Source: Setoptus koraiensis
Lineage: Eukaryota > Animalia > Arthropoda
Reading direction: 5' to 3'
Assembly: GCA_048013815.1 (NCBI GenBank)
Contig: CM106585.1
Location: 11,594,001 to 11,658,000 of the forward strand
DNA: 64,000 bases
Part shown: positions 37,155-45,100 of the stretch, one piece after another
Layout: every line of letters starts with the position of its first letter
Position numbering within the stretch: position 1 is the stretch's first letter
Made by a program: the position numbers and the translations under genes
The notes under the pieces: generated by a model
Database searches by the model: none
Seen by the model: only the letters and a program-made list of their open reading frames with translations
What the model was told of the DNA's origin: nothing

Positions 37155-39122
37155 TGTGGCATACAAACTTGGCTATATCCACTCAATGCTGCACTGCTAT
37201 GAATTGGGTCCGAATTAAATGATATGGCCAGAGCTGGAAGAACGTTACTCAAGCAACACTGTCCACCTTGTAATAGTTTAGGTGAAATGAATGTAACGAT
37301 AGACAATAAAGTTGCTTGGATGATAATGTTGAACAACCGGCTATAAATATACAGGTATTATGGTGTGAACCTCGTGTTTTTTCTTTTCATCCGCATGAAA
37401 ACCACACAGTATGACTGTTAGAATGGCGACACTCCGGCGTGACTTGTTTGCTTGATAGCGAGTGGAGCAGTCTTGTCTGCTGCTAGCCCAAATCCCGACT
37501 GAGATCAGCTGAGCTACTTTACACTGCAGTGCACACATACTGACTGGTAGACACAAGCGAGTCCCAGTTCGTTATACAAAAAAGATTCACTGTTAGCTGT
37601 TTATAACGATTAGTGCTTCACAGTAACTTTCAATAATTTAGTTGATATCTCTCCCGCTTGGCCACCGGCAGGGTCAAAAGCGCCTTGGTCAACAATGTTG
37701 AAATCATGACCAGGTAAAATATATACATTCGTATCAAAAGAATAAGCTGGTCGATACATTGTTGTGTCATGCAATAGCATGGATAGACATTGTTGTTGAT
37801 TCTGAAGAGAGAAAAGAACTGCAGCAAAATCATACTGACAAGACAGAGAGTTCATCGTTGAATCATTTCTTTGCAACCATCACGCAGATCAAACAACAAC
37901 AACAACAATCCAGTCTTGGCCACCACAAATATTATTGAGTGGCGTAACTGTCCATCTGGCGCTGCTACGAATACAATAATCATCTCGACTACTGCGACGT
38001 TTTGTTCTCCTATTCAGACAAGACATGCGATGTGTGCCGTACAATATTGGAGAGAATAAATTAGGATAAAGAAGCAAACATAGCCAGCCTCTCGTGACAT
38101 CCGAGACCTTGAACCCTTTTCTTGACAGATATCACATCACAAGCATTTATTTGCAACATCCCAAGTTTACAATACAAAGGAACACCAAACCAACTGTCTA
38201 GTGGCGCGCTGACAACCATCACCATTCGACTTTGTCACTGCAGACAGCAAAAAAGTCTATTGTTATCATAGTATTTGCATATCGTTACTATCATACTATT
38301 AATACATGAAAATTGGATTTATTCATTACAACAATCGGAGAAAAACAAATCATGTTGTAGTTCGCGATGATCTATCAGCGGTAAATCTTTGCTTCATACT
38401 CTAAATTGATTACCAGTCAGCGCGTTTAGTTCCCATTACTCATCGTACACATCATGTACAACACACAACATCACTCTGTTTTTGTTCATCGTCAACGATA
38501 AATGCCAATGCTATACCAAACATTATTAGACTGGAAACATTAAATAGTTATTTCGCAAACTAATCCACACTTGCTAGCATAGTTCAAATATTATTATATA
38601 GGTAGGTCACAGCTTCACCTGCTATTACATTCGGATTAATAAGCGCAGCACATCAGATATACAAACGTACATACATGGACTTGATGGTTCAATTTTATGG
38701 CAAACTGCTTCTAAATTAATTATATCATGCTAGCTCGAAACACAAGCCTATCATGTTTGATTCCGACTCATTAATAGATATCAGCCCGATTTTGTACTAC
38801 TCAATTCTCATACCTGTGTCACTTATAGTAGTCTTATTTTTTCGATTCTGGTCCTGGTTTGGATTCGAGTTGTACATAAATAACTGACTGACATTTATTA
38901 TATTGCCCACAAATGCACAGCCAAAGTAGTCTAAATCTACTTAATCACTTCTAATACAGTCGACAACGCATCTGAATATATACGAAGAAGTAGCCTCTGA
39001 ACCGAGTCATGTCATTTAATTGTACAAAATCAAGCCCTCTCGAAACAATTATCTTGATGACACATGCTCATGGTGTTTAAACAGGACATTCAATTAAATT
39101 CAGCTCTACAATCTCATTGCAA

Positions 39123-40301
39123 ATGTTTCTAAGATTTTCCTCTAGGCGCCTAGCCTTATTTGGCTTAGGAATCCTATGTACTACCACTATTATTATGATT
39201 TTATTTTATGGCGGTCCAGAATCTTTCCTCAACAAAAGGCCACAACCCGAATGGCTTTCCCCCAAAAAATACGTAACCGAACCTGATGGCTCTGGCGAAG
39301 GTAAAAAGTATCCATATAGTAAAGATATGCCACTAATCTTTGTTGGAGGTATGCCACGAAGTGGAACAACTCTTCTTAGAGTCATGCTAGATTCTCATCC
39401 AGATATAAGATGTGGCGAAGAGACAAGAGTGATACCAAGACTATTAAATCTGAGGAATGGCTGGGTCAAAGCACCCATCGAATCTAAGAGGCTACAAGAG
39501 GCAGGTATCTCACAAGAAGTATTGGATGCCGCAGTTAGTGCATTCATTTTAGAGATTATAGTCAGGCATGGAAAACCAGCCAATCGATTATGCAACAAGG
39601 ATCCATTCACTCTCAAAGCTGCCGTTTATCTACATGGTTTATATCCAAATTCAAAATTTTTATTTCTAATTCGTGATGGAAGAGCTGTAGCCCATTCTAT
39701 TGTATCGCGAGGCGTTACAATATCAGGTTTCAACCATCAGGACTATCGCGAATGCCTGATGAAATGGAACTCAGCAATTAAGGTTATGCACGAGGAATGT
39801 CAAAAATTAACCGAGTCCGTGTGCCTTCCAGTCCATTATGAGCAACTCGTTCTCCATCCGGAGACTATGATGAAAAGGATTCTCAATTTCTTGGATTTAC
39901 CCTGGAACGAAACAACGTTGCACCATGAAACACTAGTTAATGAACCGAACGGTATTCGTCTATCGAAATTAGAACGATCTACTGATCAAGTTATCAAACC
40001 TATCAATACCGAAGCCCTCAGCAAATGGGTTGGTGCTATGCCTAAAGATGTGGTCCGAGATATGAGCATAATTGCGCCGATGTTATCTGTTCTAGGCTAC
40101 GATCCATACGCTAACCCACCAAATTATGGCGATCCCGATGCATTTGTAAAGCAGAAGATGAAAGAAATAGAAAGTAACAAACTTGATTGGTCTATTAAAG
40201 AACAGCAATTAATTAACGAACGTGAAAATCTAAGGAACCAGTTATCGCTGAAAAGTGGACAACCCCAATTACCAGAATCTTCCACAAATACAACAACATG
40301 A
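39123..40301 (+). CDS. TPST: Protein-tyrosine sulfotransferase (type II Golgi membrane), intronless CDS
   Basis: N-terminal signal anchor [19 protein letters not shown], 5'-PSB motif [39 protein letters not shown] and 3'-PB motif RDGRAVAHS. The first ATG is at 39123; the track ORF starts at an upstream TTG. Confidence 0.95.
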
Positions 40302-40475
40302 TACAAAACACATTAGCCTCATACCTCTTTTTGTTTGACTAGTGATCTTCAATAAGAACGATTATAACAATTTCAAGTGTCTCTTATTTAGAATATGTAC
40401 CATAAATTAGGCAGACTACATACTAAGGTAGTATTTAATTGATAAATCTTTCTACATCCGAATCTAGACTCCTGA

Positions 40476-40940
40476 TCACCTTTTCTTCGAACCTTTCTTC
40501 TTCGAATTTCGTTTCAGCTCTCGTCGCCTTTCAATGTTCCTCTGTTTTTTCTTTTTCATCATTTCTTGTACCTGTTCGTGCTTTTTTGTGCGTTCATTCC
40601 ATTTCTTTTTGTGCATTTTCTTGATAGACTCTTTCTTCTTGATAGATTTTTTTATTAAAACTGGATCGTCTTTTATCTTGTCACCTTTAGCCTTGAGCAT
40701 TGCAGCTTTCCAAGTTGTATCATCCTTTATTTTTCTTGCTTTCTCCTCCGGTAGTTTCTTGAGTTTTTCTTGGAATCTAAGAGCTTGGGTAAGTTTCGTT
40801 TTCAAACTATTCTTCTTGAACTTCGCCTGCAGCGGATCGATAAATTTGGGATCATCGGGAATTGAATCAATTTGGTTAAAGATAATCTTCTCTTTCTCCG
40901 AAAATGGAGCCAACACTACATTAGCGTCTTTGATCTTCAT
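40476..40940 (-). CDS. SURF6: SURF6/Rrp14-family nucleolar protein, short form (154 aa) with the C-terminal SURF6 domain
   Basis: Lys-rich, with the SURF6-domain signature W-KAAMLKAKGDKIKDDPVLIKKSIKKKE...KKWNER...KKQRNI. Much shorter than typical family members. Confidence 0.8.
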   Translation of the reverse strand: MKIKDANVVLAPFSEKEKIIFNQIDSIPDDPKFIDPLQAKFKKNSLKTKLTQALRFQEKLKKLPEEKARKIKDDTTWKAAMLKAKGDKIKDDPVLIKKSIKKKESIKKMHKKKWNERTKKHEQVQEMMKKKKQRNIERRRELKRNSKKKGSKKR

Positions 40941-41188
40941 TTTAACAATAGTAGATTGTCTCGTAGAATAATTTTATAGTTAATCCGAAGAACTATAATA
41001 TCTTTTGTAACGCATCGGCGGCCGCATGGACACGTTTTTAATCAGCACGCCTGCTGCGATCATGTGTTTGTGTTGTGTGCGGTTTGCACGAATATCTCAC
41101 ACGTTTTCGAAGATGAATTCATTGGAATCAATACGCGATTCCCAAATTATAAAATCTAATTAAATCAGTGTCATAGGCTAATCAGATG
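40938..41188. promoter_or_regulatory. Bidirectional promoter/5' UTR between SURF6 (-) and DNAJA3 (+); copy A
   Basis: About 245-bp head-to-head spacer. Shares colinear motifs with 47467..47751. Confidence 0.7.
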
Positions 41189-42580
41189 TCTACATTTTTT
41201 CTGAAACACATCGGGAGATGCTCCTCGGCGGTAGGAGACAAGCAGCTTAGATTTACACAATTATTCAATCCCAAATTAACACTACCCAAACAAACGTGGG
41301 CAGAGGAACAAAGCTTCGGAATAAACCAAAAGACAAATATTACGGGACTACGTTCAAGTGTTTTTGGTGCCTACCAAAGACCATCGACATTGTGTTCCAA
41401 TTTTTCATGTACTCACACCAAAAGGTTTTTACATACCACTAGGATATTGAACAAAAGAGACTATTATGATGTATTGGGGGTGGCCAAAAATTCCACTCAG
41501 AAAGACATCAAAAAAGCATATTATGTTTTAGCCAAAAAATATCATCCAGACACAAACAAGGATGACCCACAGGCAGCCAAGAAATTCCAAGAGATTTCTG
41601 AAGCTTATGAAATATTAAGCGACGAGACTAAAAGAAAAAATTACGATTTCACAGGCGCCGCTAATTCTAATCCCAATGCAGGCTTCTCGCGGCATGGGTC
41701 TGCGGGCAATACTTATAGACAGGATGGTTTTGGTTCTTTCACAGACCCAGAAGAGTTGTTTAGAAGAATCTTTCGCGACTTTGAGCAACAATACGGCACG
41801 CCATTTGATAAGGGCGGCAATACCGGCAACGAATACGACGAGTCAAACTGGGGTATGGGTCAGTCACAAGAGATTAGCATGAGCGTGACGTTCAAAGAAG
41901 CTGCCATAGGCTGTAACAAGGAGATTGACATTAATATCGGTGACGTCTGTCCTGTCTGCTCTGGCAGCCGATGTAAACCTGGTTATAAGCCTATCAAGTG
42001 TCCATACTGTCAAGGAACTGGCATAGAGACTATATCGAATGGTCCCTTCATGATGCGATCAACTTGTAGAGTATGTAAAGGTTCGAGAATGTACATAAGA
42101 GATCCTTGTATGGAGTGTAGCGGAAAAGGCCAGACCATACAACGTAGAAGAGTGATAGTTCCTGTGCCAGCGGGAGTAGATGATGGCGAAACAATTAAAA
42201 TGCGGATAGTCAATGATAAAGAAATATTTGTTACATTTAGGGTTGCTAAGAGCTCATATTTTCGACGTGATGACAACGATGTGCACACCGAGGCTGCAAT
42301 TAGTGTTAGTCAAGCTATTCTAGGTGGATCAATCAGAATTGAAGGTTTGTACGAAGATATAACATTGAATATAGAACCAGGCACATCGTCTCATGTAAGA
42401 ATGAGATTACCATCCAAGGGTATTAAACGAATGGATAGTTTTGGCCGTGGTGACCACTATGTTCACATAAAGATTCAAGTGCCAGAAAGACCTACTGCTC
42501 GCCAAAAAGAGTTGATTAAGGAGTTCGCTCAGGCAACCGATACCGAGTCGAAGTTCGGTAAGGTTGATGGTGTGTCCTGA
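41186..42580 (+). CDS. DNAJA3: Mitochondrial DnaJ homolog Tid1 (type I J-protein), intronless, 464 aa to the first stop; possible extension to 42823
   Basis: J-domain DYYDVLGV...YHPDTNK...[16 protein letters not shown]-rich linker, four CxxCxGx(G/R) zinc repeats and the C-terminal peptide-binding domain ([22 protein letters not shown]). The Tid1-type FLHTT motif precedes the J-domain. Confidence 0.93.
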
Positions 42581-43805
42581 CGGGAAAGAGTTCAACGTAG
42601 CCAAGATGATGATCCTGAGGTTGGCGAGGAAAAGGATCTTTTACCGCCAAGATGGTTGTTTTTTCTAGCTGCTGCAATTGGCTGTGGTGTCATCTACTAT
42701 GTTGGACTGAAACTAAATTCTACAAATGTTTACACTTATGAATATTATAATGAGATCAAACCTAAATATGAGATCCCGGAAACGCATTATTCATTGCCGG
42801 TAGATAAAGAAAAGAAAGAATAGAACTTGAAATGAGGCTTCACTCAATAAATTAATCTCAACCTTTCAGTTGAGAACTTGAATGGTTGGCTAGTAAAGCA
42901 AGTTGTGTAATTAATAGATTAGTGAAGTAAGTGTCACAACATTTGCATGGGGTTTTGTCCCTAGAGCACCTTACGAGCTCATAGTTAAAGATTCATGGAG
43001 AATGGTGAATGTAAATCTCTTTCTAGTCACTTCTGATAAGTCAAGGTTGTTTAAGTTATAAAGAAAATTTAGTGTGATGAGTCACGGTTAAAGATTTGTA
43101 TGAATCAAGGTTAAGCACAATGCGGCAGCCCTAGGGACGTTCCCGGGTAACTAGCGACTGTTTTAACGACTCTCTCTATCTCTCTCCCTTTCGCATCATG
43201 TGATGATGTGATTTTCAATGCCAACGCTCTCGAGCGCTTGGAGTTGTCGTGTGTATGCAAAGGCATAAACATGGATGATCTATCGTCTATGTACGTAGTA
43301 TATGTAAATTTCTCGTGAAAGAATGCTCTTGAACGCTCGATTATTTTATCGTGATTCTAATCAGCAAAATTGAATTGGGAGTTTACGTGTGAGTGTTAAC
43401 ATTGAAAACAATTTCATTGCCAACAAAAATAAGTTTAGAGCGCAATCTCAACTCCCTTAGCAGCACCCTCCCCGGATCCTTTGTGATGTTACTACTGTTG
43501 GTTATGACGGCCTCGCAGTCACGCAAGAGGAAAGAGGAACCTAGCCAGATTCAAGTAGATAGATTCTGTCTAAACAACTAACACAAAGGATAAAATGTTT
43601 AACCTGAGTGCGCCTGTCACTAGCCACCTAGCTTGCGATAGCACATAGCGACTCTCTAGTTGCATAGCGATACTAAGCTAGTGGCGTCTATGTGAGCGCG
43701 CCTAGATCGAGTTGCGCGTGTGCCTCAATTGTTCGCTATTGAGGTCAACATCGCAGCATTGAGCGTGCCTCATGAAGACATTCGAATTTTTCCCCCATTA
43801 ATTGT

Positions 43806-43900
43806 GGTGCGCGTACACTCGCAGTGGTTAGACTGTGGATCTGTATTCGTTGTGGTGCATGCAGCGCACCGGCCCTGGTAGTTCGATTCTGCTGCGACCC
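43806..43900 (+). ncRNA. Degenerate tRNA-like element (pseudo-tRNA or Pol III/SINE-like)
   Basis: A-box-like CAGTGGTTAG (43822), B-box GTTCGATTC inside a T-arm-like hairpin GGTAG-TTCGATT-CTGCT, and two further hairpins. Arm spacing is non-canonical. Confidence 0.3.
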
Positions 43901-44197
43901 CCCTGGCCCGTGCAATTTTGTTCGAAAATCGAACTCGAGCTAGCAAATGAGGTGGTAGCTAGCGAATTTTCGTGTCGTATATAAGAGCTAGCGCAAAGCG
44001 ACACAACGCCATGGACTGGATGTCCGAACGACCGTTGTTGTTAACTCGTTATGATTATTCGTTATTAAATCGTTAATTAATATTATTATGATTATTATTA
44101 TTATTAGTGCTATTAAGTTTGTTACAATTATTGTTGACATTGTTATTGTTGATTATTATTTCAGAAGCTGCAAAGTTTTTTTCTTTCATTCACGCCA

Positions 44198-45100
44198 ATG
44201 TCAGAAATGGCGCGACCTAGAAATTTTAAGGGATCAGACGGACGGTATTCAAGCAAGAGCAAGTACAGCAAATCGGGCAGAAACAACGACGGCTCAGATA
44301 GGCACCATAATCACGATAGGCACCATGGATCGTCTAGCCACGACGACCACAGAGAGAATCGCGATTTTCGCGATCTCAAACCATTACTAGTGGTGGACCC
44401 TGGACCTAGTGGCCTTCTTAATTCGGATCCCACTACTTATCGTTACAGATACAGCAGCAGTAGCAGGGTGAATGCAAACAATTATTACCGACACAACAGA
44501 TTCCGAATGCTTAATGGTAGCCCATTAGGCAGATTGCGCTCCATGGACAGCACAGATTCAGGCGATGGTATTGTGGCGGGAACAAGCATCGGTACGTCTC
44601 CAATCACAGAACTTCCAACAACACCAACAGCAAGTTGCCCGACAACAACACCAACTGCATCGGCACCAACAACAGAACCTTCGGCACCGCCAATAGAATT
44701 GGCCTCGCCCACACATTCTGTAGATTCGACATCGACAAAAGTTATCTCACCCAGCGATACCATTGACCTACCGCCAACTTATGATGATGTAATGAGCGGC
44801 GCCCATCTACGCTCCACCACCACCACCACTACCACCACCAGACAATTACCATCCGCTCCCAAAAATCATTCTAACTCAACGCCGGACATCTCATCAGACC
44901 TACGCGATGGCGGTCACCATAGTGGCTCGTTGAACGAACGAGTATCGGAAGAGGACGAGGCTGATAATGAGGCCGACGGAGATAACTCTAATGATCCTAG
45001 AAGAAGAAGAAAAAAGAATAAATGCAAGAGAACGGCAGCATCGAAAATAAAGAAAGGCCTAGCGAATATTGCTTTCTTCTTGATACAAATCTTAGATTAG
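44198..45100 (+). CDS. Uncharacterised 300-aa low-complexity protein with a PPxY motif and a hydrophobic/basic C-terminal helix
   Basis: Long ATG-initiated ORF in a gene-dense region, His/Ser/Thr/Pro-rich, containing LPPTYDDVM and ending RRRRKKNKCKR...KIKKGLANIAFFLIQILD. Family not recognised. Confidence 0.65.
   Translation: MSEMARPRNFKGSDGRYSSKSKYSKSGRNNDGSDRHHNHDRHHGSSSHDDHRENRDFRDLKPLLVVDPGPSGLLNSDPTTYRYRYSSSSRVNANNYYRHNRFRMLNGSPLGRLRSMDSTDSGDGIVAGTSIGTSPITELPTTPTASCPTTTPTASAPTTEPSAPPIELASPTHSVDSTSTKVISPSDTIDLPPTYDDVMSGAHLRSTTTTTTTTRQLPSAPKNHSNSTPDISSDLRDGGHHSGSLNERVSEEDEADNEADGDNSNDPRRRRKKNKCKRTAASKIKKGLANIAFFLIQILD

Follow-up and report, generated by a model that had tools for sequence, protein, structure and literature searches.

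An in-frame extension behind the TGA-C stop of Tid1 in eriophyoid mites, conserved as coding sequence and a candidate for readthrough to a membrane-anchored isoform

The 64,000-nucleotide stretch of the Setoptus koraiensis genome analysed here (contig CM106585.1, positions 11,594,001 to 11,658,000 of the forward strand; hereafter the window) comes from an eriophyoid (gall mite) assembly of 48.8 Mb in two contigs and carries a single-exon gene for Tid1, a mitochondrial J-protein, whose open reading frame (ORF) is closed by a TGA followed by C. By translation, frame 0 then stays open for exactly 80 codons (42581-42820). The same arrangement recurs at the Tid1 loci of seven other eriophyoids, and the pattern of substitutions indicates that the extension is under selection as coding sequence in the Tid1 frame. 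This conservation strongly supports the view that one gene would give rise to both a soluble and a membrane-anchored Tid1, and programmed UGA readthrough is, in our judgement, the probable source of the membrane-anchored isoform. The comparison further suggests that the whole mite superfamily may make a second, membrane-anchored Tid1 by recoding of a stop and not by splicing. Tid1 (DNAJA3) is the essential Hsp40 of mitochondria, and in mammals its two isoforms, which differ at the C-terminus, do not behave alike.

By its predicted domains and closest relatives, the main ORF is Tid1/DNAJA3, a type I mitochondrial DnaJ protein and the orthologue of l(2)tid. An N-terminal leader is followed by the J domain with its HPD motif (seen in ...KKYHPDTNK..., about 90 residues lying ahead of the domain), four CXXCXGXG zinc-finger repeats and DnaJ_C, with Pfam matches to DnaJ (1.4e-27, residues 92-154), DnaJ_CXXCXGXG (PF00684, 7.9e-12) and DnaJ_C (PF01556, 1.8e-29). 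Every one of the best named matches is a mite or insect protein labelled "tumorous imaginal discs" or DnaJ l(2)tid, led by the Tid proteins of Fragariocoptes setiger and Aceria tosichella, with E values down to 1e-167. An exact database look-up of the window's own Tid1 returned nothing on record. The genome holds a single full-length Tid1 copy, the other matches in it being mostly to the J domain alone.

The main ORF closes with ...GKVDGVS-TGA, and the C that follows lies at 42581. A preliminary description of the window, made from its letters, had reported behind this stop an in-frame run of 80 codons made up of an acidic linker, a 19-residue hydrophobic segment and a polar tail and closed by TAG, and both its coordinates and its peptide proved right, as did its placing of an AATAAA at about 42846 (features are collected in Table 1). 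The best 19-residue hydrophobic window of the extension has a Kyte-Doolittle mean of 1.98. A Pfam search of the extension gave no match, and no paralogue of it was found elsewhere in the genome.

Genomic contigs encoding eleven eriophyoid Tid1 homologues were compared with the window. Eight loci bear the extension (the window, L002, L003, L004, L005, L006, L007 and L011). In every one of them the main ORF ends at a conserved ...FG-x-V-N/D-G-x-x motif, the stop is TGA-C, and 70 to 97 open frame-0 codons follow with a single hydrophobic segment and, past it, a charged tail; frames +1 and +2 close within 0-45 codons at these loci. The linkers of the seven other loci are 28-39 codons long, acidic or charged, all open and all in frame 0, and their hydrophobic segments lie at a similar position with Kyte-Doolittle values of 1.63-2.68. 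An R-F/Y-F-G-L motif is frequent in the extensions. The codons flanking the stop vary between loci and TGA-C is invariant (8/8), the ~20 nt past the stop being somewhat better conserved than the remaining linker. The four extension-less loci end in TGA-A (L001), TAG-C (L009), TAG-A (L010) and TAA-A (Fragariocoptes), and in SURF6 and prefoldin orthologues of these same contigs the stop codon varies between TGA, TAA and TAG. We also noticed that at seven of the eight extension-bearing loci the interval from the first to the second stop is free of canonical poly(A) hexamers and that the first such hexamer sits between 4 nt before and 83 nt after the end of the extension, which suggests that the extension is placed inside the mRNA.

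Identity of the main ORF across species is 60-91%, and its synonymous sites are saturated (proportion of synonymous differences, pS, ~0.8; synonymous divergence, dS, 1.17 in the closest pair); neutral DNA could not keep a frame open over such distances, because even the synonymous sites have reached saturation. Within the extension the proportion of nonsynonymous differences, pN (0.38-0.58), is lower than pS (0.67-0.90) in 28 of 28 pairs. Nucleotide alignments made independently of the protein place most differences at codon position 3 (0.55-0.64) and fewest at position 2 (0.36-0.48), alignment gaps are multiples of 3 in two pairs, and GC content is higher at first than at second codon positions at every locus. 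The seven extension peptides from outside the window are significantly alike, with z up to 21. Conservation in related species, to which the preliminary description had looked for support, is thus present for the stop as well as for the coding pattern.

Public sequencing runs were aligned to the locus, two of DNA (X1, X2) and two RNA-like (X4, X5), and their contigs were compared with the assembly. Contigs from all four runs span the TGA with no difference listed there; the X5 contig (42187-42622) has zero mismatches and the X4 contig one unplaced mismatch near an end. Since contigs of two DNA and two RNA-like runs agree at the stop, the TGA is no assembly error, and the sense codon at 42578-42580 that the preliminary description had named as a ground for refutation did not appear in these contigs. 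The RNA-like contigs (42001-42620 and 42187-42622) follow the genome without a break through the TGA and the next 40 nt, and runs X4 and X5 cover just the genic parts of 38800-44700.

The extension must be reached from the Tid1 ORF, because it carries coding selection in the Tid1 frame and has no start of its own. An independent downstream ORF was considered and ruled out: the extension of the window is without any Met, and a Met ahead of the membrane-spanning segment is absent in seven of the eight extensions. No antisense ORF over the extension was found.

One way of joining body and tail would be alternative splicing that removes the stop with a species-specific, frame-preserving mini-intron, and the preliminary description had offered such an intron of 48 nt as the other route to two forms of Tid1. 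Its letters are right, with a donor-like GTAAGG at 42558 and an AG ending at 42605; mammalian and mosquito Tid1 isoforms do arise by alternative 3' splicing at nearly the same point of the protein (PMC4941349 for mammals), and since rare variants are lost from contigs, a low-abundance spliced form could go unseen in them. However, the joint (42557/42606) is seen in the contigs of none of the four runs, and both RNA-like contigs run unspliced across the site. The donor in the window scores only 3.5 bits and the acceptor lacks a pyrimidine tract, and in the other seven species no corresponding donor and acceptor pair is conserved; across all eight, the best donors score from -0.2 to 3.5 bits and lie at non-equivalent positions with purine-rich acceptors. 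The splice would also remove the conserved ...FGxVxGxx end together with the relatively conserved first codons past the stop, and splicing would need neither frame 0, nor an open linker, nor an invariant TGA-C, all of which hold at all eight loci. The one eriophyoid whose genome has been examined closely, Aculops lycopersici, retains few introns, and these are long and lie mostly towards the 5' ends of genes (PMC7738191). We regard splicing as quite unlikely. Recoding of the UGA by other means, that is, as selenocysteine or through adenosine-to-inosine (A-to-I) editing to UGG, has in its favour that the stop is always UGA, the sole selenocysteine codon and one that can be edited to Trp, but neither form fits the remaining data. 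Selenocysteine is excluded, since its machinery and a selenocysteine insertion sequence (SECIS) were not found: there is no tRNA-Sec (the sole sub-threshold match being a tRNA-Ser(AGA)), SepSecS was not found in the genome, and the + strand of 42300-44200 gave no SECIS or other Rfam match; a linker would besides be an unlikely place for this residue. As to editing, the edited A has a 5' G, generally the least favoured neighbour for ADAR, no stable duplex is predicted, and the RNA-like contigs read TGA. Both forms of recoding are very improbable. With splicing, selenocysteine and editing disfavoured, translational readthrough of UGA-C is the route left, so that of the preliminary description's soluble and membrane-anchored pair the two-isoform idea is strongly supported by conservation at eight loci and its readthrough route is favoured, and its intron route is not supported.

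Several observations nevertheless weigh against readthrough. Both RNA-like contigs end at 42620/42622 with no loose letters, and nothing is covered from 42623 until 44040; the mRNA that is seen may lack most of the extension. The extension peptide of the window is not significantly similar to the other seven (z -0.7 to 1.0), and it is equated with them by position, stop context and architecture, not by sequence similarity. The closest relative of the window, L001 (87% protein identity), has lost the extension. No stable RNA structure 3' of the stop was found when 123 nt from the stop were folded in the eight species (z -0.8 to +0.7), a stimulatory 3' structure being a feature of some readthrough cases only and not obligatory. 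In a background sample of ORFs of at least 150 aa in 264 kb of the genome (G000:C1:5000001-5200000 plus the window; the 200 kb fetched include 500 N), at least 80 open post-stop codons in frame 0 occur at 5 of 75 ORFs, with 2/75 and 4/75 in the other frames, and this small, underpowered sample contains no frame-0 excess of post-stop ORFs. Abundant readthrough is documented only for arthropods diverging after the centipede (PMC5100048), so the earlier statement that readthrough is common in arthropods is correct for the lineages after that split (insects, crustaceans) and not for chelicerates. Finally, we infer from the sequence that translation proceeds past the stop, and the same applies to actual ribosomal readthrough, its efficiency, the residue placed at the stop and the location of the long form. 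The contig ends, the missing similarity to the other extensions, the deletion of the region in the sister species with at least three losses on the gene tree, and the fact that 80-codon post-stop open frames are not rare in this genome would suit an extension that is a relic in this species, once translated and now left behind by an mRNA that ends or is processed ~40 nt past the stop. Yet the 80 codons are still open (P ~0.002 for at least 80 in shuffled downstream DNA), and the hydrophobic segment, the acidic linker and TGA-C are intact. No poly(A) hexamer precedes 42846, and the hexamer there follows the second stop closely, as in the other species. The point where the contigs end reads CCTGAG/GTTGGC, a weak donor-like sequence with no poly(A) hexamer before it, and the low-depth RNA-like runs also leave holes of 300-500 nt inside coding sequence; the end could stem from low depth or from a polymorphic branch point, or it could mark a short 3' end or splicing within the 3' untranslated region (UTR). 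A relic seems unlikely to us. As for an untranslated 3' UTR that is fortuitously open and hydrophobic, the single-genome pattern is only mildly unusual, given the five long ORFs with equally long open frames, and AT-rich DNA often encodes hydrophobic stretches. Still, TGA-C stops are scarce (3/75 ORFs in the background sample; 1/25 long ORFs other than Tid1 across the window and related loci), and the pattern is beyond chance because it recurs in seven other species, with the same architecture, frame and stop context, neutral divergence that is saturated, and coding-type substitution. For the clade as a whole the chance reading is already contradicted, and we give it hardly any weight.

If UGA readthrough operates as we propose, the Tid1 mRNA would continue past the TGA at 42578-80 and carry the extension. 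Most ribosomes would stop at this TGA and release the ordinary soluble mitochondrial J-protein, and a minority would decode UGA-C by a near-cognate tRNA and go on in frame for 80 codons, the product thereby gaining the acidic linker, one predicted transmembrane helix and the polar tail. The N-terminal leader together with a single transmembrane segment points to anchoring in the mitochondrial inner membrane, which would be the simplest placement of the long Tid1, with its J domain on the matrix side. No termination context is weaker than UGA followed by C, and the context in the window is UGA-CGG, a classical one of viral readthrough. An excess of TGA stops, and of C as the base that follows, has been discussed for readthrough genes (PMC5100048). 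As a separate observation, the small genome sample described above gives no sign of widespread readthrough.

The history of the extension was followed on a gene tree of the main ORFs from a quick maximum-likelihood search. Loci with the extension are scattered across the base of the eriophyoid clade, and those without it are nested among them, L001 as the sister of the window, L009 as the sister of L007 and L010 inside a large Aceria-type clade; this distribution is consistent with an ancient origin of the extension followed by three or more losses. The loss in L001 appears as a deletion of ~0.65 kb (window ~42538-43190 versus L001:4355-4375) that takes the last ~14 codons, the TGA, the entire extension and the 3' UTR, the ORF now ending in ...EATSFWH before its own stop. 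In eriophyoids without the extension, Tid1 closes with short tails rich in Trp or aromatic residues (SSWSDGWS, SWFNFNFK, SWWSSFKS, PFAWIRKSL), followed by other stops; these tails are located at L009:3339-3383 and L010:3360-3404 and in proteins P0013-P0034. They may be what is left of the amphipathic ...GKIKKAIFG tail found in other arthropods, or they may have replaced the membrane anchor. A profile of the eight extensions, searched against 1.84 billion representative proteins, found no model in which Tid1 is fused to the tail, although the profile is weak and absence of such proteins is not implied; its matches were a 74-residue ORF called from the extension of L003 itself and one spurious repeat protein. 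The comparison also shows that the gene models of these genomes miss a coding segment; neither a model nor a transcript with the tail joined to Tid1 is on record.

Jungreis et al. in 2011 reportedly described genes of Drosophila and Anopheles that undergo functional, conserved readthrough of their stop codon. The mite locus resembles functional readthrough in these insects (Jungreis et al. 2016, PMC5100048) in having a second ORF with a coding signature in frame 0, a conserved TGA with C as its 3' neighbour, neither an in-frame ATG nor a splice site that would account for the second ORF, and a C-terminal peptide that would be present on a share of the protein. It differs in that the mite is a chelicerate, abundant readthrough having been dated after the centipede split, in that the extension would add a whole membrane anchor, and in that no genome-wide frame-0 excess is seen in the small sample. 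We found no paper on readthrough of Tid/DNAJA3 in the searchable literature. Readthrough also reveals the peroxisomal targeting signal PTS1 on mammalian LDHB and MDH1 and on fungal glycolytic enzymes. Here again one gene and one mRNA serve two destinations and a cryptic localisation element lies behind a leaky UGA, but the element in the mite is a predicted transmembrane segment within a 70-97-residue extension of a matrix chaperone and not a C-terminal tripeptide. Two insect readthrough candidates carry peroxisomal targeting signals (PMC5100048). The mite Tid1 would be a further case of an already known type of recoding, with relevance for the fields of recoding and of mitochondrial chaperones.

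The closest parallel for the two forms themselves is mammalian Tid1-L and Tid1-S together with insect l(2)tid, where a shared J-protein body is followed by C-termini diverging a few residues past ...G-x-V/I-x-G-V/I.... The divergence of the mammalian long and short forms just after GTVNGVT had been pointed out in the preliminary description and is correct, and the mite stop stands at the same point (PMC4941349). These isoforms are made with alternative 3' exons, unlike those of the mite gene, which is a single exon with its two parts split by the stop alone. A tail with a transmembrane segment is shared by the mosquito isoform X1 and some lepidopteran models: long Tid isoforms with a C-terminal hydrophobic segment were seen in mosquitoes (P0037, P0040, P0044, P0045, P0067) and Lepidoptera (P0029, P0089, P0105), the mosquito tail being an alternative 3' exon that diverges right after ...GVTFKTDG. 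A limited search found no paper on the hydrophobic tails of mosquito or lepidopteran Tid. An hhalign comparison of the mite tail with the transmembrane tail of mosquitoes does not support their homology (only 5 columns aligned, probability 3%), and no transmembrane tail was seen in Tid entries of tick, horseshoe crab, trombidiform mites or Daphnia; that the mite and mosquito tails arose by convergence is equally likely. Yeast Mdj2 and Pam18/Tim14 are mitochondrial J-proteins anchored in a membrane, and they are separate, short, type III proteins. They hold a J domain at the inner membrane by one transmembrane helix, as the predicted long Tid1 would, but the long form of the mite would have the complete type I architecture and carry its anchor at the C-terminus, its location being a prediction.

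It is conceivable, if rather doubtful, that in gall mites, where most introns have been lost, readthrough took over the role of alternative 3' splicing in providing the second, differently localised C-terminal isoform of Tid1, with UGA-C kept since near the base of Eriophyoidea. As homology of the tails is unsupported, a replacement of a spliced transmembrane exon by readthrough stays speculative. Had readthrough taken over this role of splicing, it would be a general means by which animal genomes with few introns maintain isoform diversity, and gall mites would provide the first case among chelicerates of a readthrough gene that is ancient and under selection. If readthrough of Tid1 as such holds, conserved functional readthrough would be extended to chelicerates, and the gene would offer a clean case of readthrough switching a protein from soluble to membrane-anchored, with natural controls in the three lineages that lost the tail and changed the stop codon together.

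Table 1. Features of the Tid1 gene and its extension in the window
Feature	Position	Strand	Description and basis
Tid1/DNAJA3 main ORF	41186..42577 (stop to 42580)	+	464 codons, single exon; ORF list, Pfam, relatives
First stop TGA and next C, candidate readthrough site	42578..42581	+	sequence; 4 runs; 8 loci
Acidic linker	42581..42652	+	24 codons without Met or stop; translation
Predicted membrane-spanning segment	42653..42709	+	extension residues 25-43; Kyte-Doolittle
Polar C-terminal tail	42710..42820	+	37 codons, Tyr- and charge-rich; translation
Second stop TAG	42821..42823	+	sequence, translation
AATAAA, first canonical poly(A) hexamer past first stop	42846..42851	+	23 nt after second stop
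Candidate 48-nt frame-preserving intron, not supported	42558..42605	+	donor score, conservation, RNA-like contigs

In the surroundings of the gene, a SURF6-like gene (40476-40940, - strand) lies head to head with Tid1, with ~245 bp between the two, an arrangement that recurs in the majority of related loci (L001, L003, L004, L006, L007, L009). Prefoldin and mitochondrial ribosomal protein L4 genes are often found near the SURF6/Tid1 pair, L4 being near Tid1 in two relatives. Downstream on the + strand of the window, a 300-codon Ser/Thr-rich ORF (44198-45100) with a hydrophobic C-terminus and no Pfam match is covered by RNA-like contigs from ~44040 on.

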